A stretch of 64,000 nt of DNA, taken from Podarcis pityusensis (Eukaryota). The notes under the pieces are model-generated. The model made no database searches. It worked only from the letters and a program-made list of their open reading frames with translations, and was not told where the DNA came from. Location of the stretch: the NCBI GenBank assembly GCA_964106645.2, contig OZ067039.1; one strand, given 5' to 3'. Below, piece by piece: positions 3,901-58,700 of this stretch (positions within the stretch are counted from its first letter, which is position 1; the number at the start of each line of letters is the position of its first letter). A program made the position numbers and the translations under genes.

Positions 3901-5026
3901 CGGCGACAAAGTTTTCTACATGTGGAAAAAGCTGCCACAGATGACAGAGGTGATCATAACGACCAAGAACGTAACTGTTTTCTTCAAGGTGGAGGTATGT
4001 AGCAGCATGTGTGGTTACGTTTGTGTTGCATTTCCGGGTTGGAGGTTCCTCCTACATTCATCCGCAAGCCACCGTTTGTCTCATTTCTAAGGCTGCAACT
4101 TCTTTTTCTTTTTCATTTTCTCCTCCATTTCTATCTGTGGCTATGTGCAACAGAATTGCAGAGTTGAAAGCCATTGGTTGAGAAGAGGGGAAGTTCCTTC
4201 TCCCATGCAATAAGGCACACAAGGCACAGTTTCTCAGTGCTGTTATTCCACACGGTAGCGTTAGCAGCAAGTAACAATCATTCCCAATTATTTCAGTGTC
4301 CAGTTATAAAATAGTTATTGGTTATGTACGCTTGTCCTATGGGCCTTGGAAACGTTTATATCTTTTAAAATCCATACATGAAAGCATCCAGTATAAAAAG
4401 ATCAATATATTACTGTTGAAGAGTTATTGTTTTTTTGTGACTTCCCCCCTCTTTTTTGTATAAAAATTAGAAAAAGATCAAAATATATCACACTATTATT
4501 TACACTGTCCATGCTTGGAGGATCACTGTAAAAAAACACAAACATGTTTTAAAAAACACACACACGGGCATAGCATGCATCTCACTCTCATCTACTGCGA
4601 GACAGTGGTGACATTGCTGACTTCAATCTATTATTATTATCATATATTGCATGGTTTAAACTCACTAAGCGCAATCTTAAATGAGGATGTGGAGGGAGTA
4701 AAGTAGACGACCATCTACTTTTTCCAAAGCTGTACCAGTGTGTATCATCCAAGGTGGAAGGTAGGCCATGTAATTATTCCATCTAGCAGTGCTGATTCTT
4801 TTTCTTTAATTCTCGCCATTTTCTTTAATACTCGCTATTTTGAAAATTTTTGGAGGGGCTGGAGGGTGGGGAGATTAATGGGCCCAATCCCAGGGCCTCT
4901 TGAGGGAGTGTATGGGCTTTGGATTCAGCCGACTGAAGGCCACCTCTGCCCTGCCTCTGCTGAGTCCATTCTGTCCCTAAAATGCTCCATTTGGGGGCCT
5001 AACACTAGCTACTGCTGGTAGAAATA

Positions 5027-5342
5027 CAGTGGTGCCCCGCAAGACGAATGCCTCGCAAGACGAAAAACTCGCTAGACGAAAGGGTTTTGTGTTTTTTTGA
5101 GTCGTTCCGCAAGACGAATTTCCCTATGGGCTTGCTTTGCAAGACGAAACGTCTTGCGAGTTCTTGTGAATTTGTTTCCTTTTTCTTAAAGCCGCTAAGC
5201 CGCTAATAGCCGCTAAGCCGTTAATAGCCGCTAAGCCGCTAATAGCTGCTAAGCCGCTAATAGCCGTGCTTCGCAAGACGAAAAGACCGCAAGACGAAGA
5301 GACTCGCGGAACGGATTAATTTTGTCTTGCGAGGCACCACTG
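5027..5342 (+). mobile_element. Tc1/mariner (Tigger/pogo-like) MITE, copy 1
   Basis: TIRs CAGTGGTGCC(C/T)CGCAAGAC, TA duplication, internal (AATA)GCCGCT microrepeat. Confidence 0.9.
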
Positions 5343-6463
5343 TACCACTTGCAATAGGCCTATGGAAATCTATGCCTGCAATAGATGTATGTCCACATGC
5401 TTTCCTCGCTGGTAGAAAGACAGCTCCATCCTATCCTGATCTTTTCCAGTCAGTAGATCTGAGGGATTGCTCTGCCCTTGCTTAATAATGCCTGACATGT
5501 GTAATAATCTCTAGGTTGCTTGTGGAATCCTCCTGTTGGTTGCGACGGCTTTCCTCTCCACTATAGCTTGAAACAGAAGCACCACCCAGTCATTTGCTGC
5601 CCTTCTTTGTATATATAGCCCTGAAAACAAAACACTACAGGGGAAAGCTGCACAGAGACTCTCAGAAAAGGTTGGTTGGACATAGGAAGAGTTACGATAA
5701 TAAAGAAAAAAAAGGCACTAGGTTGTTTTGTTTTTGCCTCTCACACAAGAACTGAGCTAAAATGGGGGAGCTGACTTTTGTACATGGCTTTATGCCCATT
5801 GAAAAGTGTCATATAGGTGTGGGGGAGCATGAAATATTTGCAGAAAGAGTCTCATCAGCCATGGCAGCAGAGCCATTTCCCCCTGTATGGAAATCCAAAA
5901 TTGATGCAGCTCTAGTATTAAAACCTGACTCAGAAAAATAACTTAAGAAGAGGGTTGATGCCTGCCAGCACAATTTTACTGCTGTGGATTGTGGCCTGCA
6001 TTCAAGGACACTGGTTTGCCACCATCATGGGCAGCTCTGCCCTAAATTTGCACTAATCTAAATGTTTTTTTAAAAAATATATAGCATAATGCAGACATGA
6101 AAGCAAGATGCAAAGTCAGCATTAAAATGGAAATAAAACCAGATTTATTTGCCAGGCATAGAATCAAAAAGATAGAATCAAGCAGGAATAAGTTGGCATA
6201 TTTCCTGACCAATTAATTTTAGTTATAATTTCATAAGCAAAATGCTGAGTTTCTTGTCTCTTTGGTCTAATCCCTCTATGATGGCTATATTAATATCGGG
6301 TATTCAGCAAAGATATCTACATTTGCCTCAGTTCATTTTCTCCCCCTTTCCCCCCTTTTCCTTTACAAAATAGCTCTATTATGTATTAGTTCCATGCTAT
6401 TACTCTTGCTAAGCAACTATCTTAATTCAAGCCAAAGAGAAAATCTAAGGTAGGGTACGATAC

Positions 6464-10244: not shown

Positions 10245-10317
10245 CTGATGAAGCACAAGGATGTTGCAGATCTTATACTACTACTCATATGTGGCCCAGC
10301 GACACCTCTTTCACCTT
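10245..10317 (-). pseudogene. Partial duplicate of the 15589-15660 exon end and its donor flank; donor destroyed
   Basis: Near-identical to about 15546-15617, but ctcacat is changed to ctcatat (GT>AT on the minus strand). Confidence 0.8.
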
Positions 10318-10465: not shown

Positions 10466-10836
10466 TGTGGAGAGAATCAGAACCTACAGGGTTAAGAGGT
10501 TCTGTGTGACGTCTTACATTCTGAGGCGTGGTTGAGTATACTGAGGGGAGTGTTTCCTGAGTTCAGTTCTGGTTTCGCTTTTGCGGAGAGAGGACGCAAG
10601 ATGTGTGCGTTGTCGCCCGGAGAGATTTAAGAGCTGTTTTTCTACACGAATAAAGACTTTTAGAAGATAAGGAAGACACCGTGCGTGCTGCCTGATTTAT
10701 GTTTACACACACGCACAGCAACAGTTTCTCGCTGCGTGCACTCTGCCCCCCTGCCTAGGTCAGCTTCAGGCTTCCGAGCAGAGCTGCGCAGGGGAAGCGC
10801 TGGCTGGACGGCAGGGCAATTTGCCAAAGGCCAATA
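10466..10836 (+). repeat. 5' LTR (371 bp, TG...TA)
   Basis: Direct repeat of 13794-14164; AATAAA at 10649-10654. Confidence 0.95.
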
Positions 10837-10844
10837 GGTTATGG
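10837..10844 (+). promoter_or_regulatory. Primer-binding-site-like GGTTATGG
   Basis: Immediately after the 5' LTR; matches the first 8 nt of the copia-type GGTTATGGGCCCAG site for an internal fragment of tRNAiMet. Confidence 0.6.
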
Positions 10845-11095
10845 ATGGTCAGAAAACGCTTTGAAGCTGTTGCCAGACGTGCCGGGGTGTGTGTGGGAGC
10901 CAGCTGAGGAGAGGCTGTGGAGAGCTTGGAGCTGTGCCTAACGTTTGAAGGCAAGCTGACGACGCTGAAGCCAGCTTTGAGTCCTGCCTGAAGCTGAGAG
11001 AGGCAGACGAACTCAGCTGGGAGGAGCTGATCTGCTGGACCGGGAGCTGGAGAGCTGCTGTTTGTTTACGTGAGTACGCTGGGCCCCGGGGAAAG

Positions 11096-13837
11096 ATGGC
11101 AGATGACCAAGAGGTGCTTGAAGCTCCACTTGAGAAGCTTGAAGAGCTCACCACCCAGTCGTGGGAAACCTGGGTCAGGAAAGTGAGAGCCTGGTTTTGG
11201 GCAACAGGGCTGTGGGAAGTATGCAAGATAGAGCCGTCCCCAGCCAAACCGGCTGCTACTGAAAATGCAGAACTGGTGGACAGAGATGCAGAAAAGCTGC
11301 AGTCTGCTTTTCTGGAGGAGAAAATGCAGAGAGAGAAAGCTATGAGAGCTGAGATCTGCATGTTGAGAGCAAGCGTACATGCTAAGCTATTGCCGCATTT
11401 GGAAGGCATTGAGTCGGCCTGTGAAGCCTGGAAAGTGCTGAGGGGTTTGTGTCAAAGCTCAGCAGGAGGCCAGGAGCAGGATGACGCCGAGTGCTCAGCC
11501 AGAAGCCCTGATTTTACAGCCTCACGGAGTGCTGTTGGAGGTGTCGGGGGGGCAGAGAAGCCCAAAGGCCAGTTTGGAAAAGTTTCCACTGTGTATGACG
11601 AGGAGGAGTGCCGTTTCAGAGGGGGCGGAGCTGGCCCGGAAGCTTCGCTAGCTGAGAGCTCACCCCAGTGTTTTTCCACTCGTTGCTGCTACGTTTGCAA
11701 TTCTCCTGACCATCTGCGTCGCAACTGCCCACAGAGAGCAAAGGAGACAGGGCAGGATGTCTCCAAGGTCGTTTCCCATGGGAATCAGCCGGGTTTCCAT
11801 GGCAACCAGTCCAGCAGAGGGGGCAGGCGTGGGAAGTCGCAGAGAGGACGTGGCTCAGAGGGGGAAGACGGCGCTTATCAGCTAACTGCATCCATGGCGG
11901 TTGTAAAGGACACCTGCAAAGGCCCCAAGGACGGGGGCAGCGGGACGTTTGTTGCTATGGCAGCTTTGAAGGACAGCTGCAGTGAGAGCAACGTGATACG
12001 TTGGATTATTGACAGTACTGTCAACAGACATCTGATAACTGAGACACCTGGTGTTGAGATGTGGAACTGCAAACCTGTTTTGGTTGGGAAGACAGTGTGT
12101 TTTGCAGACAATTTACAAAAGCCATTGTCTAAAGTTGGACATGTTTATGTTTCTGTTTTGCAGGCGCAGCTGCGAGTCTACGTGGCGCCGGGGATACAAC
12201 ATTGTATTTTATCTGTACCTTGTCTCTTACAGGAGGGGTATAAGGTTTGCTTTGAGAAGGATGTCTGCACAATTTCCAGAGGGGGGAAAGTCTTGATCAG
12301 TGTTCCAAAAGGGAACAACGGCTTTTTTGTTCTTGAAGCACCTCTGGAGGGTGAAGGGTGTGCTGAGAAAGTACAGGCAAAGTCTGCAAAGGTTCATGCT
12401 CATGTTTCATGTGCTTGCGTGTGGCACAAGAAAATGTCACATGGTTCCTGTGAGGATATCCAGATGCTATCGGAGTGCACTAAAGGGTGCGAAATAAGGG
12501 AATGTGGTAGACCCCTAAAGTGCAGGGCTTGCAGAAAAGCCAATGTAAAAGGGTGTGGTTTTCCCAGAGTGGAGAGGGTGGCCACAAAGCCTTTTGAGCT
12601 TGTGCACACAGACCTTTTTGGTCCCATGCAAAAGCAAAGTCTGGGCGGGGCCAGGTTTGGGCTGACGCTGCAGGATGATTTCAGCCAGGTTGGCTGGTTT
12701 TATCCTCTGAAACGGAAAGAGGATGCAACGCAACTGATCAAAGATTGGATTGCGGAGGTGGAACTAAGGTTCTCCACCAAGGTGCAGGGGTTCCAGGGTG
12801 ACCGAGGGTCAGAGGTCACTGGGTCTGCTCTGCAGAAATTCTTTCGCCAGAAAGGGATACGTCACAAGGTGACTTCTCCTCAGGAGAAGGGAGTGGCAGA
12901 GCTTAGGAGCAAAGCTCTGGTTCAAGCAACAGAGATTCTACTGAATGACTCTGGTTTGCCTCAAAGCTTTTGGGGGGAAGGAATTAAATTTGTAAATTTC
13001 ACGAAGAATAGGTCCTACAATTCAGTGGTAGGTGACACCCCGCATTTTATGCTTCACGGAGAGAAGCCGAACCTGCATTTCCTCCGTGTATTCGGTACGA
13101 GAGCTGTGGTGTCGGTACCAAAGTTTCTGCAAGAGCAGGGTGGTCCAAAGGTCCAGGAAATGATCTTCTGTGGGTATGATCCTGCAACAAATGGGTGGAA
13201 GTTTGCATACCCAGAGGGTGATCAGACCAAGCTTCTGGTCAGCAAGCATGCTGAGTTCTGTGAGCAGGATGGTTGGGCAAGGCGCAAAGTGAGCCCTGAC
13301 GTTCTCTCAGATTGTCTATCTGAATCTGAGGAGGAAGGAGAGCTAGAGGCTGAACCTGAAAATGAGGACCAGGTCCAGGATCAAGGTCCGGAACAGGTTT
13401 GGGCATCTCCACGGGTTGTTAAAGGAGTGTCCAAAAGTGAGCCTTCATCTCCAGTGAGCATAATGGAGAAAGCTCACAGATGGGTCAAGTCAGAGGGGGA
13501 GTCGTCTGGTGAAGAAGACGCACTTGCTGGCCCCAGTGGGTCAGAAGAAGCACCCCAGTTCGTGCCCAGGCGTTCATCTCGGGCAACAAAGGGAATTCCA
13601 CCTGAAAGGTATGAAGCCACTAGTGTTTGGGTTGGTGTGGCTAGGTGCGAATCTGAGATTTGTGAGGAGGTTCAACAGGTGCCTGACAAAGACGCCAGGA
13701 AGAGGCGAAAGGCAATGGGGAAGGTGTTGAACTCTCAAGGGTCTGTAAATATGTGTGTCCACAACTCCTCTCAGAATGTAAGGCGAGAGGGGGTGTGGAG
13801 AGAATCAGAACCTACAGGGTTAAGAGGTTCTGTGTGA
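11096..13837 (+). CDS. Copia-like Gag-protease-integrase polyprotein, 913 aa, no RT or RNase H
   Basis: Gag N-terminus WETW..VRAW....GLW; CCHC knuckle CYVCNSPDHLRRNC; protease-like WIIDST..RH; HHCC WHKKMSH..CRAC; integrase LVHTDLFGP / GDRGSE / GVAE; SH3-like MIFCGYD; stop lies inside the 3' LTR. Confidence 0.92.
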   Translation: MADDQEVLEAPLEKLEELTTQSWETWVRKVRAWFWATGLWEVCKIEPSPAKPAATENAELVDRDAEKLQSAFLEEKMQREKAMRAEICMLRASVHAKLLPHLEGIESACEAWKVLRGLCQSSAGGQEQDDAECSARSPDFTASRSAVGGVGGAEKPKGQFGKVSTVYDEEECRFRGGGAGPEASLAESSPQCFSTRCCYVCNSPDHLRRNCPQRAKETGQDVSKVVSHGNQPGFHGNQSSRGGRRGKSQRGRGSEGEDGAYQLTASMAVVKDTCKGPKDGGSGTFVAMAALKDSCSESNVIRWIIDSTVNRHLITETPGVEMWNCKPVLVGKTVCFADNLQKPLSKVGHVYVSVLQAQLRVYVAPGIQHCILSVPCLLQEGYKVCFEKDVCTISRGGKVLISVPKGNNGFFVLEAPLEGEGCAEKVQAKSAKVHAHVSCACVWHKKMSHGSCEDIQMLSECTKGCEIRECGRPLKCRACRKANVKGCGFPRVERVATKPFELVHTDLFGPMQKQSLGGARFGLTLQDDFSQVGWFYPLKRKEDATQLIKDWIAEVELRFSTKVQGFQGDRGSEVTGSALQKFFRQKGIRHKVTSPQEKGVAELRSKALVQATEILLNDSGLPQSFWGEGIKFVNFTKNRSYNSVVGDTPHFMLHGEKPNLHFLRVFGTRAVVSVPKFLQEQGGPKVQEMIFCGYDPATNGWKFAYPEGDQTKLLVSKHAEFCEQDGWARRKVSPDVLSDCLSESEEEGELEAEPENEDQVQDQGPEQVWASPRVVKGVSKSEPSSPVSIMEKAHRWVKSEGESSGEEDALAGPSGSEEAPQFVPRRSSRATKGIPPERYEATSVWVGVARCESEICEEVQQVPDKDARKRRKAMGKVLNSQGSVNMCVHNSSQNVRREGVWRESEPTGLRGSV
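13780..13793 (+). promoter_or_regulatory. Polypurine tract
   Basis: aaggcgagaggggg immediately before the 3' LTR. Confidence 0.8.
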
Positions 13838-14164
13838 CGTCTTACATTCTGAGGCGTGGTTGAGTATACTGAGGGGAGTGTTTCCTGAGTTCAGTTCTGG
13901 TTTCGCTTTTGCGGAGAGAGGACGCAAGATGTGTGCGTTGTCGCCCGGAGAGATTTAAGAGCTGTTTTTCTACACGAATAAAGACTTTTAGAAGATAAGG
14001 AAGACACCGTGCGTGCTGCCTGATTTATGTTTACACACACGCACAGCAACAGTTTCTCGCTGCGTGCACTCTGCCCCCCTGCCTAGGTCAGCTTCAGGCT
14101 TCCGAGCAGAGCTGCGCAGGGGAAGCGCTGGCTGGACGGCAGGGCAATTTGCCAAAGGCCAATA
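13794..14164 (+). repeat. 3' LTR (371 bp)
   Basis: No mismatch with the 5' LTR found by eye; followed by the AGGTC TSD. Confidence 0.95.
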
Positions 14165-15483: not shown

Positions 15484-15588
15484 CTAGAGAGAAAAGAAAA
15501 CTACTAGAAAAAGGCTTGGAATATTGCTTTCTGCTTTCTGCTTTCTGCTGAAGCACAAGGATGTTGCAGATTTTATACTACTACTCAC

Positions 15589-15660
15589 ATGTGGCCCAGG
15601 GACACCTTTTTCACCTTTATGACCACTTTCACCTTTTGCACCCTTTGCACCATCTGAGCC
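15589..15660 (-). CDS. COL23A1: COL23A1 exon, 72 nt, GSDGAKGAKGESGHKGEKGVPGPH
   Basis: atgcag|...|gtgagt. Confidence 0.93.
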
Positions 15661-16705: not shown

Positions 16706-16732
16706 CTTGTGTCCTTGAATTCCTTGGGGACC
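16706..16732 (-). CDS. COL23A1: COL23A1 exon, 27 nt, GPQGIQGHK (second copy)
   Basis: ttgcag|...|gtgggt. Confidence 0.85.
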
Positions 16733-18369: not shown

Positions 18370-18396
18370 CTTATGCCCCTGTATTCCTTGAGGACC
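18370..18396 (-). CDS. COL23A1: COL23A1 exon, 27 nt, GPQGIQGHK (first copy)
   Basis: ctttag|...|gtgagt. Confidence 0.9.
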
Positions 18397-22806: not shown

Positions 22807-22896
22807 CGGTGGACCAGACAAGCCCATTTCTCCTGTCTCTCCTCTCTCCCCCGCTATTCCGGGGTTTCCTTGGTCTCCTTTCAATCCTTTCGGACC
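22807..22896 (-). CDS. COL23A1: COL23A1 exon, 90 nt, GPKGLKGDQGNPGIAGERGETGEMGLSGPP
   Basis: ttgtag|...|gtatgt. Confidence 0.92.
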
Positions 22897-24079: not shown

Positions 24080-24169
24080 TGGGAGACCACTCATGCCAAC
24101 ATCTCCTTTCTCTCCTTTTTGTCCTATGAGTCCGGAGCTTCCTTGGTCTCCTTTCGAACCTTTAGGACC
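24080..24169 (-). CDS. COL23A1: COL23A1 exon, 90 nt, GPKGSKGDQGSSGLIGQKGEKGDVGMSGLP
   Basis: ttacag|...|gtatgt; paralogue of 22807-22896. Confidence 0.9.
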
Positions 24170-27260: not shown

Positions 27261-27338
27261 CTTGAGAGCTTCCAAGATTCTACCATCGTAGTCAATTACT
27301 ACTGTATCACCCTGTTCTCCTTTCAGGCCTGGAGGACC
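27261..27338 (-). CDS. COL23A1: COL23A1 exon, 78 nt, GPPGLKGEQGDTVVIDYDGRILEALK (NC2)
   Basis: ttgtag|...|gtaacc; diagnostic NC2 peptide. Confidence 0.96.
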
Positions 27339-28446: not shown

Positions 28447-28491
28447 CCTTGGTCCAATGTGTCCATCTGCTCCTCTTTCACCAGGTTCACC
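28447..28491 (-). CDS. COL23A1: COL23A1 exon, 45 nt, GEPGERGADGHIGPR
   Basis: tttcag|...|gtatga. Confidence 0.92.
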
Positions 28492-31883: not shown

Positions 31884-31946
31884 CTTTGGCCCTGGTAGAC
31901 CATTTATTCCATTCACTCCTATTGGGCCAACACTTCCTGGTTCTCC
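31884..31946 (-). CDS. COL23A1: Array exon GEPGSVGPIGVNGINGLPGPK
   Basis: 63 nt, AG/GT, open. Confidence 0.8.
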
Positions 31947-32037
31947 CTGTAATGTTTGAAGGAGGTGCAATGGAAAACTCTCAGTTTCTAAGCAGGCCAG
32001 GTGCTAGTCTCACTATCCTTTCCAATGTGATACTTAC

Positions 32038-32100
32038 CTTTGGCCCTGGAAGGCCATCTGTGCCTTTCTCTCCTGTTGGGCCAACACTTCCTGGGTCTCC
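32038..32100 (-). CDS. COL23A1: Array exon GDPGSVGPTGEKGTDGLPGPK
   Basis: 63 nt, AG/GT, open. Confidence 0.8.
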
Positions 32101-32191
32101 CTGTAAAGTTTGAGAGAGGTGCAATGGAAAACTCTCAATTTCCAAGCAGGCCAGGTGCTAGTCTTACTATTCTTTCCCATGCGCCACTTAC

Positions 32192-32254
32192 CTTTGGCCC
32201 TGGTAGACCATCTGTGCCTTTTTCTCCTGCCGGGCCAGGGCTTCCGGGTTCTCC
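32192..32254 (-). CDS. COL23A1: Array exon GEPGSPGPAGEKGTDGLPGPK
   Basis: 63 nt, AG/GT, open. Confidence 0.8.
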
Positions 32255-32520
32255 CTGAAATGTTTGAAAGAGGTGCAATGGAAAAGTTCCAGGGCTGGAT
32301 CCAGATTCTGCTAGCAGAAGCCCGCACAAGGCATTCTACTCGCACAATTTCCTTCTCTCTCCTCCCCCTGTGCCCTGCCATTTGCTGGAGTGGGTGGGAG
32401 AACCCCCAGATCAGTGGGGAGAGGGTAGGAGAGGGGAGATTGTTTTGTTAAGCAAACAGATATGCTTGCATTGATATGAATGATGCCTAACCTCACTATC
32501 CTTTTCCATATGCTGCTTAC

Positions 32521-32583
32521 CTTTGGCCCTGGTAGCCCATCAATGCATTTGTCTCCTACTGAGCCATTGCCTCCTGGTTCTCC
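32521..32583 (-). CDS. COL23A1: Array exon GEPGGNGSVGDKCIDGLPGPK (Gly>Cys)
   Basis: 63 nt, AG/GT, open; one triplet Gly replaced. Confidence 0.7.
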
Positions 32584-32672
32584 CTGTAATATTTGAAGGA
32601 GGTGCAATGGAAAACGCAGTTTCTAATCAGGGCATGCGCTAATCTTACTATCCTTTCCCATGCGTTGCTTAC

Positions 32673-32735
32673 CTTTGGCCCTGGTAGACCATCTATGCCT
32701 TTCTCTCCTATTGGACCAGGGCTTCCTGGTTCACC
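32673..32735 (-). CDS. COL23A1: Array exon GEPGSPGPIGEKGIDGLPGPK
   Basis: 63 nt, AG/GT, open. Confidence 0.8.
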
Positions 32736-33227
32736 CTGCAATGTTTGAAAGAGGTGAAATGGAAAAGTCTCAATTTTTAAGCAGGGCAATAAGACCCAGT
32801 ACAAGCAGCTGGACATCTGGGAGGCTGGGTAAGAAGAGTCACCACCACTGCCCTCCTCAGCACTGCCCTCTGTTTCTGTCAGCCTCCTCTGGAGGACAGA
32901 TGAGGAAGCCAGATGTGAACCATCTAGTTAAAAGACCATTCTTCTGCTGTACTGTATTTATTGTCCGTTAACTTTCATTTTGCTCTATACTTAGGCGTTA
33001 GGTCTAGATTATATTTTTGTAATATTGAAGACAGTATATTCTACGTTTCTTGCTGAATTGTTGTTGTCTTTACAAAACTGCTTTCTCCCCAATCAATGTT
33101 TTGCAGTTTAATAGGAAAAAGGGAATTTGTTGTAAGCTGCTTTAGGAACAGCTCACTGTGCAAATGTGCCATATACATAAACTTAAATGAACTAAACACC
33201 CTTCAATCTTTCCCGTGCTCTGCTTAC

Positions 33228-33290
33228 CTTCGGCCCTGCTAGACCATCTAAGCCTTTCTCTCCCATTGGGCCAATGCTTCCGGGTTCTCC
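33228..33290 (-). CDS. COL23A1: Array exon GEPGSIGPMGEKGLDGLAGPK
   Basis: 63 nt, AG/GT, open. Confidence 0.8.
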
Positions 33291-33381
33291 CTATAATGTT
33301 CGAAAGAGATGCAGTGGAAAACTCTCAGTTGGTAAGCAGGGCATATGCTAATCTTAGCATTCTTCTCCATGCACTGCTTAC

Positions 33382-33444
33382 CTTAGGCCCTGGTAGCCCA
33401 TCTATGCCTCTCTCTCCCACTGAGCCAGCGCTTCCTCGTTTTCC
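33382..33444 (-). CDS. COL23A1: Array exon GKRGSAGSVGERGIDGLPGPK
   Basis: 63 nt, AG/GT, open. Confidence 0.8.
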
Positions 33445-33531
33445 CTGTGGTGTTTAAGGAAGGGCAATGGAACTCTCAGTTTCTGAGCAGGTATCATCAA
33501 GTCTTAGTATATTTTCTGATGTGCTGCTTAC

Positions 33532-33594
33532 CCTTGCTCCTGGTTGCCCTTTTATGCCTTTTTCCCCAGTCTGACCAATGCTTCCTGGATTTCC
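33532..33594 (-). CDS. COL23A1: Array exon GNPGSIGQTGEKGIKGQPGAR
   Basis: 63 nt, AG/GT, open; strongly diverged yet all Gly kept. Confidence 0.8.
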
Positions 33595-33686
33595 CTGTAG
33601 TGTTTGAAAGAGGTGCAATGGAAGACTTTAAGTTTTCAAGCAGGGCATGTGCTAAATCTTAGCCGTCATTCCCATGCACTGCTTAC

Positions 33687-33749
33687 CTTTGGCCCTGGTA
33701 GCCCATCCATGCCTCTCTCCCCTGTTGGGCCAATGCTTCCCCGGTTTCC
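33687..33749 (-). CDS. COL23A1: Array exon GNRGSIGPTGERGMDGLPGPK
   Basis: 63 nt, AG/GT, open. Confidence 0.8.
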
Positions 33750-33842
33750 CTGTCAATTTTGAAAGAGGGAGAATGGAAAAACTTGGTTTCTTAGCAGGCT
33801 ATGTGCTTAGGATCTTGTTATCCTTTCCCATGTAATACCCAC

Positions 33843-33905
33843 CTTTGGCCCTGGTAGACCACTCATGCCTCTTTTTCCCACAGGGCCAATGTTTCCTGGT
33901 TCTCC
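33843..33905 (-). CDS. COL23A1: Array exon GEPGNIGPVGKRGMSGLPGPK
   Basis: 63 nt, AG/GT, open. Confidence 0.8.
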
Positions 33906-33996
33906 CTGTATTATTTGAAAGAGGTGCAATAGGAAACTCTAAGTATCTAAGCATGGATTGTGCTAATCTTAGCATTCTTTCCCATGCACTGCTTAC

Positions 33997-34059
33997 CTTT
34001 GCCCCTGGTAGACCATCTATGCCTCTCTCCCCTACTGGGCCAGGACTTCCTGGTTCTCC
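33997..34059 (-). CDS. COL23A1: Array exon GEPGSPGPVGERGIDGLPGAK
   Basis: 63 nt, AG/GT, open. Confidence 0.8.
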
Positions 34060-34148
34060 CTATAGTGTTTTAAAAAAGGTGCAATGGAAAACTCTGTTTC
34101 TTAACAAGACATGTGCTAGTCTTTTATCAAGTCCCATGTGCTCCTTAC

Positions 34149-34211
34149 CATTGGCCCTGGTAGACCATCTATGCCTCTCTCCCCTACTGGGCCAGGACTT
34201 CCTGGTTCTCC
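34149..34211 (-). CDS. COL23A1: Array exon GEPGSPGPVGERGIDGLPGPM
   Basis: 63 nt, AG/GT, open. Confidence 0.8.
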
Positions 34212-34302
34212 CTGTAGTGTTTAAAAGAGGTGCAATGGAAAACTCTCAGTTGCTCACCAAGGAAAGTGCTAGCCTTTTTATCCTTTCTCATGCACTGCTT
34301 AC

Positions 34303-34365
34303 CTTTGCCCCTGGTAGACCATCTATGCCTCTCTCCCCTACTGGGCCAGGACTTCCTGGTTCTCC
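34303..34365 (-). CDS. COL23A1: Array exon GEPGSPGPVGERGIDGLPGAK
   Basis: 63 nt, AG/GT, open. Confidence 0.8.
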
Positions 34366-34457
34366 CTGTAGTGTTTTAAAAAGGTGCAATGGAAAACTCT
34401 CAGTTTCTCACCAAGGCAAGCACTAGCTTTTTTTATTCTTTCCCATGCACTGCTTAC

Positions 34458-34520
34458 CTTTGGCCCTGGTAGACCATCTATTCCTTTGTCTCCCATTGGG
34501 CCAACACTTCCTGGTTCTCC
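34458..34520 (-). CDS. COL23A1: Array exon GEPGSVGPMGDKGIDGLPGPK
   Basis: 63 nt, AG/GT, open. Confidence 0.8.
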
Positions 34521-34610
34521 CTGGAGAGTTTATAAGAGGTGCAATGGAAAAATTTCAGTTTCTGAACAGGACATGTGCTAGTCTTTTATCCATTCCCATG
34601 TGTTCCTTAC

Positions 34611-34673
34611 CTTTGGCCCTGGTAGACCATCTATTCCTTTATCTCCCATTGGGCCAACGCTTCCTTGTTTTCC
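34611..34673 (-). CDS. COL23A1: Array exon GKQGSVGPMGDKGIDGLPGPK
   Basis: 63 nt, AG/GT, open. Confidence 0.8.
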
Positions 34674-34763
34674 CTGTAGCATTCAAAAGAAGTGCAAAGA
34701 ACACACTCATTTTCTAAGAAGGGTGTTCATCAGTTTTACTGTACCATTCAAGAAGATGCTTAC

Positions 34764-34826
34764 CTTTGGCCCTGGTAGACCATCTATTCCTTTCTCTCCC
34801 ATTGGGCCAACACTTCCTGGTTCTCC
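34764..34826 (-). CDS. COL23A1: Array exon GEPGSVGPMGEKGIDGLPGPK
   Basis: 63 nt, AG/GT, open. Confidence 0.8.
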
Positions 34827-34917
34827 CTGTAATGTTTGAAAGAGGTGTAGTGGAAAACTCTCAGTTTCTAAGCAGGCCAGGTGCTAGTCTTACTATTCTT
34901 TCCCATGCACCACTTAC

Positions 34918-34980
34918 CTTTGGCCCTGGTAGACCATCTTTGCCTTTGTCTCCCATTGGGCCGGGGCCTCCAGGTTCCCC
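34918..34980 (-). CDS. COL23A1: Array exon GEPGGPGPMGDKGKDGLPGPK
   Basis: 63 nt, AG/GT, open. Confidence 0.8.
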
Positions 34981-35071
34981 CTGTAGTGTTTAAAAAAGGT
35001 GGAGTGGAAAACTCTTAGTTTTTGAGCAAGGCAAGTGCCAGTCTTTTTATGCTTTCCCATGCGCTGCTTAC

Positions 35072-35134
35072 CTTTGGCCCTGGTTTACCGTCTATGCCTT
35101 TGTCTCCCATTGGGCCAACGCTTCCTTGTTTTCC
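35072..35134 (-). CDS. COL23A1: Array exon GKQGSVGPMGDKGIDGKPGPK
   Basis: 63 nt, AG/GT, open. Confidence 0.8.
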
Positions 35135-35224
35135 CTGTAGCATTCAAAAAAAGTGCAAAGAACACTCTCATTTTCTAAGAAGGGTGTTCATCAGTTTTAC
35201 TGTACCATTCAAGGAGATGCTTAC

Positions 35225-35287
35225 CTTTGGCCCTGGTAGTCCTTCATTGCCCTTCTCGCCTATGGGCCCAATACTTCCTTGTTCTCC
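35225..35287 (-). CDS. COL23A1: Array exon (first in transcript order) GEQGSIGPIGEKGNEGLPGPK
   Basis: 63 nt; unique upstream acceptor flank tctcag. Confidence 0.88.
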
Positions 35288-35657
35288 CTGAGATTAATAC
35301 AAATTAAGGTGAACATTACAATCTTGCTTTCACCCCAAAGTCCAAATATTGAGCATCCTTCAAAAAGAATTCAGGCTCTAAATGACAGTCTTTAAACACG
35401 GTACAGCTGTTCTGATGGCTATTCAAGCTATTCTTTAAGAATGGTTGAGCCCCATAGGACCAAAGCGAAAGGGAAAAACAATCTTTAATTTCTGATTCAG
35501 TTTGCTCTATGTAGTGTAGAATATGACTCTCAATCACCAAAAATATTTAGGATTGAAATTTAACACGATCAACCTGTATGCCAATACTGCATTGATTCTA
35601 CTTTGTTACCCATAATATATATGATTGGGGGCGGGGAGCTACAAAAAGGAAGTTTAC

Positions 35658-35702
35658 CTTTGGCCCTTGAATCCCTGGTTCTCCTGGGATTCCAGCATCA
35701 CC
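35658..35702 (-). CDS. COL23A1: COL23A1 exon, 45 nt, GDAGIPGEPGIQGPK
   Basis: catcag|...|gtaaac. Confidence 0.92.
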
Positions 35703-36740
35703 CTGATGAAATAGAACACACATAGGTGACACTGAAATACAAAAGTGCATTAAGTTTCCCAGGGTCAATGCTGGCAGAAGCTCAACAGTTCACACTGTAA
35801 GCCTAACCAGAAAAGCAACTGCCAAATATTTTTGATCCAGAAGTTGGGACTTAATTTCTAATACTTAATTTCTAACTGTTCAGAAGAGAGAAAGAGAGAT
35901 TTCATTTATTAGCTCAGAGTAGTCTTATTTGCAGTGTGGATAAATCATGAAGACATCACTCATTATCTGTGGAACACACTGAAATGTAATCCTTAAACGT
36001 GTTTCCTAAAAATACTGTAGCCATAGGTTATGTGCAGTTCTGAACAGCATGAATTAATAATAAAGTGTTTTCCAACTTGGCCACAGCTTCTTGGTGGCCC
36101 TTCTAAGGTCCATTATATGGAAAAGGATCTTTAGCTAACACAGTCCAAAATAAATACACACATATCCTGCCCCCGACTCAGCTGCCTTGGAGAAATATAT
36201 ACAGATATTTGCTTCTTAAAACTCCAGTCCAGATATTAGCAAACCACTCCATTTGGACAGTTTCTAGAGGGGTAGCTGTGATCACTTCTTGCAGCAAGAA
36301 TGGCAGAGTCTTGTTACACCTTAAAAACTGTTATGGCAGAAGCTTTCATGTACTGGATCAGCTTCAGGGATACAACAGCACAGAGTGAATAATGTTTGAT
36401 CTACCATATCCATGGATGGGTGAGCCCCATGTGATTAGCTCTGATTACAATGCAATAGTTACACAACTCCCCTGTAGTTTGGGATGTTGCTGGATGCTAC
36501 TGAAATATCAAGAGCTTTGCTCCTCCCTTGCTCATTCTGCTGCTGCGCTGGGCAAGAAACAAACCATGGTCTGCTCTGGATCAGAGGATTGCTTTGCGCT
36601 ATTGTATTGCTGGGGTTTTTTTTGTTTTTTTTTAAAAGGTTATTTTAAATGTGTTTAGTAGTTTTAACTGCCATGTTATTTTACTTTCAAGTTGGAGATA
36701 TTTTGTGACTCTGTTGTGATAACTGAGTTGTGAGGTAGAA

Positions 36741-36745
36741 ATAGA

Positions 36746-36791
<46 letters not shown>
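36741..36791. repeat. (ATAG)n(ACAG)n compound microsatellite
   Basis: Seen directly. Confidence 0.95.
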
Positions 36792-36792
<1 letters not shown>

Positions 36793-36854
36793 GGTTGGGA
36801 ACATGATGTCTCAATGCAGATAGCATTTGAAAGAAAGAAACATAAATAACTTAC

Positions 36855-36881
36855 TTTTCCTCCTGGAATACCAGGCTCACC
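36855..36881 (-). CDS. COL23A1: COL23A1 exon, 27 nt, GEPGIPGGK
   Basis: ttgaag|...|gtaagt. Confidence 0.9.
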
Positions 36882-39546: not shown

Positions 39547-39663
39547 AGGAAGGCCTGGGGGTCCCCTTGGGCCATCTTTTCCTGTGTCTCCAGGGGGCCC
39601 TCTTGCACCCGGCTGTCCAGGAGGACCTGGCGGACCAGCAGCGCCATCATTACCTTGATCCCC
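39547..39663 (-). CDS. COL23A1: COL23A1 exon, 117 nt, [39 protein letters not shown]
   Basis: ttatag|...|gtaagg; conserved [13 protein letters not shown]. Confidence 0.95.
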
Positions 39664-49979: not shown

Positions 49980-51170
49980 ATTTCAGGAAACAAAACATAT
50001 CCATACAAGGAAAACAGAGCTTAGTAGTTGTATAGAAAAGAGAGAAAAATAGGGGCTGATGGTCGTAGTTTTAGAAGCTCCAAGAAAAGCAATCAAATGA
50101 AAGTGTCTTTCCATGAGGTTCCATGAATCAATAAAAGGATATCATGTCATACAGAAGGTGTGTCTTTCTCCACACCGCCTGATTGATATTCCTTTTGTAA
50201 AATAATTAATTTGTCCATAAGCACGTTGTCCCACACTTGTGAAATCCAGGCTTCCAAAAGATTTGCATTTAAAGTTTTCCTATTATTCGCAGTCACTAAT
50301 CTAGCTGCAGTTAATAAGTGGAGGAGGAGGTGTTTGTCGGTTATGTTCTTAAACTGAGGAGTAAAATAAGATAGTGGGGCTAATTTGGGGTCTGGTTGTA
50401 GCGATTGTTCCATCATTTGAGAATACGTTTTGGGCAAAACCACCACATATGTAGCAGAGAGCCAGGCAAATTGCATTCCCTCCAGCAAAGGTTGGATGTG
50501 TAACAATTACAGTGGTGCCCCGCAAGACGAATGCCTCGCAAGATGAAAAATTCGCTAGACGAAAGGGTTTTGCGTTTTTTGAGTCATTCTGCAAGACGAA
50601 TTTCCCTATGGGCTTGCTTCGCAAGACGAAACGTCTTGCGAGTTCTTGCGAGTTTGTTTCCTTTTTCTTAAAGCCGCTAAGCCGTTAATAGCCGCTAAGC
50701 CGCTAAGCCGCTAATAGCCGCTAAGCCGCTAATAGCCGTGCTTCGCAAGACGAAAAAACCACAAGACGAAGAGACTCGCGGAACGGATTAATTTCGTCTT
50801 GCGAGGCACCACTGTAATTCTATATAATTTGGCTGGGCAACGTGATATCTTTAAAGCATTTTCTTGAGTTCTAATTGAGATGCATCCAAATGGGAGTTTA
50901 TTCCCCATTTGTTTCCAGAGTTGTACCTCTAATTTTTCTCCAAAATCTTGACCCCATTTTATTCGTAATGAAATGAGAGGAAGTGTAGCCAGTTGTGTGA
51001 GACTGTTATACAGCTGGGAGATGATTGCCCTTCCCAGTGGGTTGGTTGAGTTGAGTAGTTGCTCAAAACCATTGAAAGTGCTTGAACCCTTATATTTGGC
51101 TAATTTAGAAAACATATAATTTGGTGTATCTCTAACCAGTCACATGGTACATCTCCCAATATAAAATTTA
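49980..51170 (-). mobile_element. Decayed L1 LINE 3' fragment (ORF2 C-terminus)
   Basis: Broken frames give ISQLYNSL..KWGQD..LEVQLW, RTQENALKI, CWREC..GSLLHMWWFCP (L1 CCHC domain) and LLTAARL. Confidence 0.75.
50510..50814 (+). mobile_element. Same MITE family, copy 2, nested in an L1 fragment
   Basis: Same TIRs and TA flanks; highly similar to 5027-5342. Confidence 0.9.
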
Positions 51171-55233: not shown

Positions 55234-55424
55234 ACCAAGAGCATTAGAAGTGCATGCTTGATCAAATCTCCCTGACTGCACAGAAGATTAGATTGCCTTT
55301 AAGGATAAACCCTCTCACTGCTGCTTATAGAATAAAATAAAGTATAAAAGCAACAGCAATGAATAATAAACAGCAGTAATCATAATAAAAGAAACATCCG
55401 GTTGAAAAATATTAAAATCCAATA

Positions 55425-55721
55425 CAGTGGTGCCTCGCAAGATGAAATTAATCCGTTCCGCGAGTCTCTTCGTCTTGTGGTTTTTTCGTCTTGCGAAGCA
55501 CGGCTATTAGCGGCTTAGCGGCTATTAACGGCTTAGCGGCTATTAACGGCTTAGCAGCTTTAAGAAAAAGGAAACAAACTCGCAAGAACTCGCAAGACAT
55601 TTCGTCTTGCGAAGCAAGCCCATAGGGAAATTCGTCTTGCGGAACGACTCAAAAAACGGAAAACTCTTTCGTCTAGCGAGTTTTTCGTCTTGCGAGGCAT
55701 TCGTCTTGCGGGGCACCACTG
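55425..55721 (-). mobile_element. Same MITE family, copy 3, inverted
   Basis: Reverse complement of the 5027-5342 family, TA flanks. Confidence 0.9.
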
Positions 55722-58700
55722 TACACAAATGCTACTAAAAGCAATCAGCACTCCAATACAACAACAACCAGAAAAAGCCAAGCAAACCAAATGGGTCGTT
55801 AGGTTTTTTGTTAAAGTCCTGTAATGACTGGGCCTGGCAGACCCCACATGGTAATTAGGTATGGCAACCAGGAGGTACTTTGGTGATTGTAAGGGTCGCA
55901 CCAAAGCGCCTCTGCTCTGGTACGCCCTTTTTACAATCGCCAGGCACCTTCCCAGAAGGTACTTTTGTAAGGGATGCACCAAAGCACCTCTGGAAGGCTG
56001 TGACTGCAGCTGAAGGAAGCAGCAGCAATCGAGGAGGAAGCAGCAAAGGTGTGGGGCAGGGGAGGGGAGCGAGTGAGCGAGCAGGCAGGAGACAAGTGGT
56101 GGCAGCAAGATGGTGGTGGAGGAAAAAGAGGTGGCAGTACGCTGTACTGACCCAAAAAACACAATGCTGACTTGAAACTCGAGTTCCTGAATATGATGGT
56201 AAGTAAACATGCATACAACTGGGTGGAACACCAACTCATTTAATTACCAATTTCAAAAGGGATTTTAGAAATACTGTGTGATTTATGCAGCGTGTACAGT
56301 ATGCACATTCATCTCCTGCAGTTTAGCATCCAAGTAATAAAAGTATAAACCAAGCCTATATATAGCCACCCTTGTATAGGGCCTTCATAAAACATCAAAA
56401 TAAAGTTTCAGTCATCTGTTAGTGCCAGGCCACGTCTGTATCCTAAGTGGCTGCATATGGGAGGCAGACAGCTGAAAAGTAAAGTCACTCCACCACTGAG
56501 TGTCCACACTGAGTGTCCTCAAACAATTTGGCAATTGCTCTGAAAATTTTTCATACTGCTATTTTGTATGGTGAAGTTAAATTGGGAGAAATCATTTGGC
56601 AGAGTAATATGGTGAGGGACACACTGACATCATTCTTGCTTAAATGCAGACCTTTATTGTTATAATCAGTCCCACAACATCCATCTGCAGTGCAGATGGA
56701 AGCAGATCTTTTCCTGAGTTTTACTATGGACAGCAAGGACCAGATATACCCCAGAGTGGATCCAGTGAGGATCCCACTTCAGAATTTGATTATTTTAGGG
56801 TGAATTCAGGGTTCACTGGAGCTGTGCGGCAGCCACTTAAGTCTACCTTGTGTTGCTGCCTATATACAGAGGGGTGATGAAGTTGTTTGTAGCCTTTGAT
56901 CATACTGTTAAGTCCAACATTATCCTCCTTCTGAAGCCTTCTCTATATCTGGAGCCTTGGGTGATTGCCAATGTTGGGCTTCACTGCATAATCAAACCAC
57001 TGCCGCCCTATGTGATACAACCATTAACTATGTAATAAGCTTTAAGCAAAGACCTGCAGTTCCTAGTTATCTGAATCTAGCAGTTCCAGATCCGGAGCAA
57101 ACCTGGCCCTCCTCTCATCTGATCAGCACATAAAGCTGTCCCAGCAAGTTCTATACCCACTAAAATATGGGCAGAAGACAAATGCCCTCAGCCACCACAC
57201 CGCTGCAACATTTTGCCAATAGAGGAGGCAAGTACAACCTTCAGGTCCTTGAGGCAGCAATCTCAAAAATGACATTTCTCTTACAATGCGTTTTAAGCAT
57301 TACAAAGCTCTGCAACTATTTTCTGCAGAGGTAGCGTTATACTGTAAAGTCTTGGACTGGAAATCTATCTTTAAACTGGCCACAAGTACAAGTATTAGAC
57401 ATACATTTTGGGTTTATTTTATTTCACACAGTGGTACTTCAAATGAGTAAGTACTCTAATAGGAAAAATGATTGGCTAAGACCAGAAGGAGTTGTGAAGG
57501 GTCAGCCTAAATATCCATGTTGCTCAGTATCCTCTTTTGGACAGAGGCCAAAACAAATGCTTCAGTTGCTGCATGGGAAATCAGGCTATTAATCTCCTTT
57601 GTTCAGTTGCAGTCAGCACTGTCATTCTAGTTTTATGCCGAACTATAATTTTGGTCCTTGCACATCTTTGACCTATACTTTTCTCCTCTGCAAATACTCA
57701 CATACAAAGCTGGACACATAGAATGCACCAGTTTTTTTATTAAAAGCATGCTCATCCAGCCACACATATTCTATAGCAGACTGGTCAGTCAATAGCTATC
57801 TGAAATTGTGCTCCTCCACTGAGTGTAGCCAAGCTAAGAGTATAGCAATTCTAAATTGCATGGGTTTTTTAAAGCACCCCATGCAGGCAACAGCACCCTT
57901 TACAATAAGGAAATCCCAGATAATAATTGCACCATATAAGCTACTCCTCCGACTTTTTGAGGCCCCTGCTTTATATAACCTTCTACACAGTTATTTAAGT
58001 TTTAGGAAAAGTGGAAGAACAAGCTGATGTTCCATGGCCATATTATGGCTGCATCTTGGCTGATAGCAATAGGCAGACTCAGATCTTGGATTTAGTAGAA
58101 TATACCATGTGATGTGAATTTCATTTGTGTGTGTGTGAAGATCACTTCTGTAATGCTTAGCAAATCTCAGCACATCGTGTAAGAAATCCAAATACATGGA
58201 TCTATTATAACCACTGCACTTTGCATATCAATCCAAACTAGGAAGCAGCTGATCATCTCACATGCATCATTTGGCCTCATGTGTTCTCATCTTCCTCTCT
58301 AGTGCCAAACCCATCACTACACAGTACAAATTAGGAACACTGCAGCCACAAAGTAAGAGCGTAGAGCAGATATGCTTTTCTAACTCATATTTGCACATAA
58401 AAGTTGCCACATGTTACACACATTACATCTTCCTTTAAATCTATACATACATAGTGGGTGTTCATTACCAGCATAAATCTGAAATAACCACAAATGCAAT
58501 CATGGAGTGTGGACTTCCACCTCGAAAACAAAATCTGAACATTCCTCTGTGCTTTAGCATAAAATTCACAGGGCAACCAGCTCAGTCAAACAGTCTGAAA
58601 TGATGCATGCTGGGGGTGGAGGCATAATCTATGAAAAGCATTATTGCTAAGAATATGTATTGAATTCTCTGCTGTCAACTTTCTCCCCACTTTTTGCGAT

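Follow-up and report, generated by a model that had tools for sequence, protein, structure and literature searches.

The COL23A1 gene in the window (the whole 64-kb stretch of DNA analysed, which contains no N) carries an array of 19 intact 63-nt exons (31884–35287, minus strand), and the reading favoured here, to which we give a probability of about two in three, is that a unit of ~154 nt was duplicated, expanded to 19 and now acts as a single regulated block of cassette exons, that is, as a length switch. All 19 exons are phase 0, bounded by AG and GT and free of stops and indels, and they have been amplified together with introns of ~90 nt, since 16 of the 18 spacers measure 87–93 nt (the other two, 266 and 492 nt) and the short ones form one alignable family in which indels do occur. 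Glycine opens 132 of the 133 triplets, the sole exception being a cysteine in copy 16. Concerning the number and integrity of the copies, the co-amplified introns with small indels and the glycine count, the initial annotation of this DNA was reproduced in full.

The host gene was identified from its exons as COL23A1, encoding collagen XXIII, a MACIT collagen, with the array lying in COL1. In fact, the exon which ends COL1 and encodes NC2 (27261–27338, minus strand) aligns with human collagen XXIII, and not with XIII or XXV, the flanking exons follow the collagen XXIII order, and the C-terminal two-cysteine motif is conserved (exons at about 9136 and 6480), all three features being as in the human protein. 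The exon map gives three collagenous domains with NC regions between them, and the exon at 39547–39663 has a Pfam Collagen match. Matches in the ESM Atlas were to generic collagen clusters only, protein searches, made exon by exon and under a length filter, yielded nothing but ORFs of exon size from genomic contigs, and Rfam gave no match. The 5' exons, for the N-terminal transmembrane anchor, the coiled coil and the furin site, were not found within the 64-kb window. On the minus strand, the array is preceded by a 27-nt exon (36855–36881; joint 35701–36854) and, directly upstream, by an ordinary exon of 45 nt (35658–35702; joint 35286–35657), and it is followed by another ordinary exon of 45 nt (28447–28491). 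Human collagen XXIII, with 540 residues, has a single such segment and an NC2 of the same type (PMC4678570 supplement), which confirms the size of about 540 residues and the single segment that the initial annotation had given for it. The short lizard isoform likewise holds one copy of the segment, whereas the window has 19, and COL1 within the window goes from 150 residues with one copy up to 528 with full inclusion.

Other exons of the gene are also found in pairs. A 90-nt COL2 exon occurs at 24080–24169 and 22807–22896 (minus strand), each copy intact with AG/GT and the two 76% alike including their flanks, a pair which may represent an older duplication, possibly alternatively used. A 27-nt COL3 exon (18370–18396 and 16706–16732, minus strand), with identical peptides and several synonymous differences, constitutes a third exon duplication in COL23A1. 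In addition, the end of a COL23A1 exon and its donor flank have been copied into an intron as a 73-nt repeat (10245–10317 and 15545–15617, 93% alike), the intronic copy sitting 150 nt from a copia-like LTR element. This intronic element (10466–14164, plus strand) has identical LTRs of 371 bp and an ORF of 913 residues with zinc knuckle, integrase and SH3-like matches, a reverse transcriptase match being absent. A MITE-like element of ~310 bp is present three times in the window (5022–5344, 50508–50816 and 55423–55723; 90–94% alike). Both kinds of element have counterparts in lacertids, which points to a lizard as host.

Within the array, all on the minus strand, copy 1 (35225–35287) has its own acceptor type and is the probable ancestral exon. 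It is followed by copies 2–6 (34458–35134; acceptors at 35134, 34980, 34826, 34673 and 34520), by copies 7–9 (33997–34365; acceptors at 34365, 34211 and 34059), whose exons are near-identical, those of 7 and 9 completely so, and which represent either the youngest block or a gene-converted one, and by copies 10–14, the most diverged set (33228–33905; acceptors at 33905, 33749, 33594, 33444 and 33290). Copies 15–17 (32192–32735; acceptors at 32735, 32583 and 32254) and the intact copies 18–19 (31884–32100; acceptors at 32100 and 31946) complete the series. Tandem Repeats Finder gave a period of 154 and, at a higher order, periods of 306 and 461; moreover, introns 1 and 4 are alike, copies 2 and 5 group together, and units 1–3 and 4–6 look like the product of a higher-order duplication. 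Copy 16 (32521–32583) combines the Gly-to-Cys change, the cysteine being read from the window sequence alone, with an Asn-Gly-Ser sequon, and the joints on either side of it are present in RNA of relatives.

The comparison of substitutions at glycine and X/Y sites, which had been proposed as a check on the copies being selected as coding sequence, was made as pairwise pN/pS among the copies and upheld that claim, the value being 0.027 for glycine codons, far below the 0.86 of X/Y codons, and 0.60 overall. When variable columns were counted, leaving out the splice-site glycine, only 1 of 12 glycine position-1/2 columns varied, compared with 21 of 26 at X/Y codons, 18 of 20 third positions and all 16 intronic consensus-G columns; the contrast is large, and its p-values of ~1e-5 to 1e-6 are indicative only, because the copies share ancestry. 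Frame, splice sites and glycine register are thus kept beyond neutral expectation. There is strong purifying selection on the glycine codons, and its target is the register of the helix, not the X/Y residues.

Evidence on the use of the copies in RNA came from four public runs (X15, X17, X20 and X24) of related species, not of the assembled one. A single species label (organism F) covers X15, X17 and X24, and X20 belongs to another species; X15, X17 and X20 consist of contigs, which lose rare forms and whose depth is a poor gauge of level, and X24 of raw reads, 22 of which were placed. Each of the four runs shows copy 1 joined to the exon upstream of it, and this copy belongs to both isoform classes. 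The main contig of X15, like that of X17, passes from the two upstream exons through copy 1 directly into the downstream exon (contig depth 81.6 and 54.4, respectively), with a loose end at 35224 matching 28461–28490 with 0 mismatches, and the copy-to-copy joints of X15 reach a depth of only 2–7. In X20, a single 360-nt contig links the upstream exons to copies 1, 2, 3 and 4, other contigs contain the joints 9-10, 10-11, 11-12, 12-13, 13-14, 14-15 and 16-17, loose ends are consistent with joints into copies 6, 7 and 16, and no loose end of the short form is listed. RNA depth was recorded over copies 7–9 of the array. The raw reads of X24 gave the joints 1-2, 2-3, 3-4, 9-10, 15-16 and 16-17, all first mates lying on the plus strand, as expected for minus-strand RNA in the usual stranded library. 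All the joints listed read GT-AG, and 11 of the 13 copy-to-copy joints link immediate neighbours, the other two being internal skips, from 12 to 15 in X15 and from 7 (or the identical 9) to 11 in X20, each in one low-depth contig. For copies 18–19 no spliced joint was listed in the four runs, with slight raw-read depth on copy 19; no molecule spanning the whole array was present among the run contigs and the 22 raw reads, and the four runs showed no joint by which the last copy included would lead on to the downstream exon.

These data bear directly on the way in which the array is used. The copies are spliced into mRNA in relatives, as had been proposed, and the serial joints of X20 and X24 contradict the opposite outcome, in which transcripts would only ever include the same single copy. 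Since skipping (X15, X17) and serial inclusion (X24, and at low depth X15) both occur within organism F, the splicing is alternative, and the isoform pattern differs sharply between runs, which carry no tissue labels. Two states are mainly observed, copy 1 only and most of copies 1–17, a pattern which resembles a block switch more than an even ladder of 63-nt steps. A cluster of mutually exclusive exons, with one copy per transcript, was ruled out by the 11 neighbour-to-neighbour joints.

As for its distribution, a search with a profile built from the copies led to a contig in run SRR31508491, from the skink Prasinohaema aff. flavipes, with three intact copies and one decayed, at a spacing of 149–153 nt. 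The fourth skink copy (L002, 604–666) has lost its acceptor and first glycine and has one stop and a 1-nt gap, the donor being kept. The skink introns are 56–64% identical to the introns of the window array, whereas shuffled sequences reach 46% and the upstream intron 48%. Skink copies 2–3 share derived residues with the window copies (Met 9, Lys/Arg 12 and, in one copy, Ile 14); skink copy 1 retains the outgroup state and, taking acceptor plus exon, groups with copy 1 of the window (support 89/90, not starred). As regards copy number, which the initial annotation had suggested comparing across relatives, the outgroup locus L005, from a GC-rich amniote, has a single copy with the next exon immediately after it. 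Two viper contigs (L006 and L007) stop 591 nt short of the downstream exon, on its upstream side, and are uninformative on the array in snakes, and an exact DNA pattern had no match in metagenome contigs. Given the skink copies and the single copy in L005 and human, the expansion looks old in squamates, with a variable copy number. A single origin before the skink–lacertid split would be the simplest reading of these sequences, not a proved one, and an AU test did not reject separate origins in the skink and the window lizard (p 0.24–0.42). The skink–lacertid split dates from roughly 170–190 million years ago.

Several other readings of the array must be weighed against these observations. That it might be an assembly artefact, or a non-coding intronic satellite, could be suspected because mis-assembly of tandem arrays is frequent and the exons of copies 7 and 9 are identical. 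Nevertheless, identity between copies averages only 81% for exons and 71% for introns, and splicing occurs at the GT-AG sites of the array. Furthermore, in a search of word content, 63–84% of the query words were found in 14 genome-sized runs (1.2–1.5 Gb; 11 guessed to be DNA and 3 of unrecorded kind) from five close organisms, and, as the array makes up 40% of the query, these runs must include array words. Adjacent copies in the same order are also crossed by unspliced contigs from another species. The array is real, and the artefact which the initial annotation had named as a possible refutation is contradicted by the runs and by these contigs; such a reading is hardly credible and is already refuted as to existence and splicing, the exact copy number being excepted.

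The initial annotation had further supposed that splicing could tune the rod in steps of 21 residues, the copies being included more or less independently to give many rod lengths as well as sequence variants. This graded use has in its favour that any subset of copies keeps the frame, that two internal skips do exist and that combinatorial exon skipping is found in collagen XIII and in the worm COL-99 (PMC4678570). However, both skips are of low depth, neighbours are linked in almost all of the listed joints, and the main alternative is a jump past all 18 extra copies; moreover, established collagen biology would lead one to expect unequal chains to mis-register in a homotrimer, and a near all-or-none switch per cell would fit folding better than a random ladder. 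The data point mainly to two states instead of free tuning, and we regard a graded ladder as unlikely. It could also be thought that the array is merely tolerated, a unit amplified by crossing-over and included by default in some cells, where selection purges only what breaks the helix, the extra length serving no positive function. The wide range of copy number (19 compared with three plus one), the near-neutral X/Y sites and the decayed skink copy would agree with this, as would the unspliced X20 contigs over the 90-nt introns, whose depth, about one-fifth to one-half of the spliced one, suggests inefficient splicing. Against it, extra copies have been retained in two distant lizard lineages, all 19 window copies keep the frame and both splice sites, when loss of an acceptor would silence a copy easily, and the sample-dependent switch looks regulated, which makes this explanation quite improbable.

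Under the preferred reading, that of a regulated block, a segment of ~154 nt comprising the end of one intron, the 63-nt exon and the start of the next intron would have undergone tandem duplication, probably ahead of the skink–lacertid split, with later growth to 19 copies by unequal crossing-over in the lineage of the window. A segment spanning the exon and both its flanks would create a new short intron with donor and acceptor, so that each unit would be spliceable at birth; units 1–3 and 4–6, as well as copies 7–9, would record unequal crossing-over or conversion. As each copy is phase 0 and encodes seven Gly-X-Y triplets, the COL1 triple helix is extended without a break. The extra copies would then be regulated together, as a single cassette: depending on the tissue or the state of the cell, either copy 1 would be joined directly to the next ordinary exon, giving a collagen XXIII of ordinary length, or most copies would be included in series, making the membrane-proximal rod and the shed ectodomain up to 378 residues longer. 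At 0.286 nm per residue, full inclusion of these 378 residues corresponds to ~108 nm of helix. This reading presumes that the long chain is translated and folds, the protein itself being lengthened, and that the switch is under tissue control. The long form might be a spacer or tether of greater length, offering additional binding sites; the 19 copies contain 30 Y-position lysines and five GxxGER hexamers, the latter being candidate integrin sites.

Regarding the control of the switch, the acceptors of copies 2–19 are poorer in pyrimidines than those of ordinary exons (fraction 0.67 versus 0.77), which fits skipping by default. The motif GCATG lies at position +10 in 9 of the 18 array introns, and an RBFOX-type site of this kind downstream of an exon usually promotes inclusion; these sites are a lead only, because the motif is absent from the skink contig and the copies are not independent. 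A mechanism based on RNA looping-out was unsupported, the inverted repeats flanking the block being short and imperfect.

Among known systems, the closest within the family are collagen XIII and C. elegans COL-99, also MACIT genes whose collagenous exons are skipped in frame; they drop distinct ancestral exons from a fixed set, whereas the lizard adds a homogeneous array as a block (PMC4678570). The splicing of collagen XXIII itself has been described as inadequately documented (PMC4678570). Mutually exclusive tandem exons are also paralogous and of equal phase (PMC9013439), but neighbouring lizard copies are joined together, and the array functions as a cassette-exon block and not as such a cluster. 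Dscam is of the mutually exclusive type; CD44 variant exons, tenascin-C FNIII repeats and titin PEVK exons are serial or block arrays of cassettes. With the latter the lizard array shares a short standard form and insertions of exon runs that change how long an extracellular or elastic segment is, and it differs in that its introns are recent enough to be aligned and its units extend one continuous triple helix. The classic model derives fibrillar collagen genes from an amplified 54-bp exon unit, and here too a helix grows as a short phase-0 Gly-X-Y exon and its intron are tandemly amplified; nevertheless, the lizard unit has 63 nt, its product is optional and the process is still legible in higher-order repeats and a decayed copy. 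Tandem exon duplication is common, and automated gene models may already include the long form; in the literature covered, on tandem exon duplication in the collagen XXIII gene and on this gene in lizards and other squamates, Podarcis included, no paper describing the array was found.

The rod length of vertebrate MACIT collagens is thought to be fairly fixed. A switch which more than triples the COL1 of the window would alter the reach of the membrane-bound collagen and the size of its shed form, and it raises the question of how chains keep their register in a homotrimeric collagen when their lengths are optional. The array constitutes an amplification of a collagen-helix exon unit in which duplication order, homogenisation and decay are still legible, and its copy number lends itself to comparison across squamates. 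In this context, it may tentatively be proposed, at clearly less than even odds, that in many squamates an old array, tuned in each lineage, would work as a tissue-specific on/off length switch, possibly controlled by RBFOX-type sites that recur close behind the donors, adding ~100 nm of helix with repeated binding or glycosylation sites, and would offer a living example of the growth of a helix by amplification of exon units.
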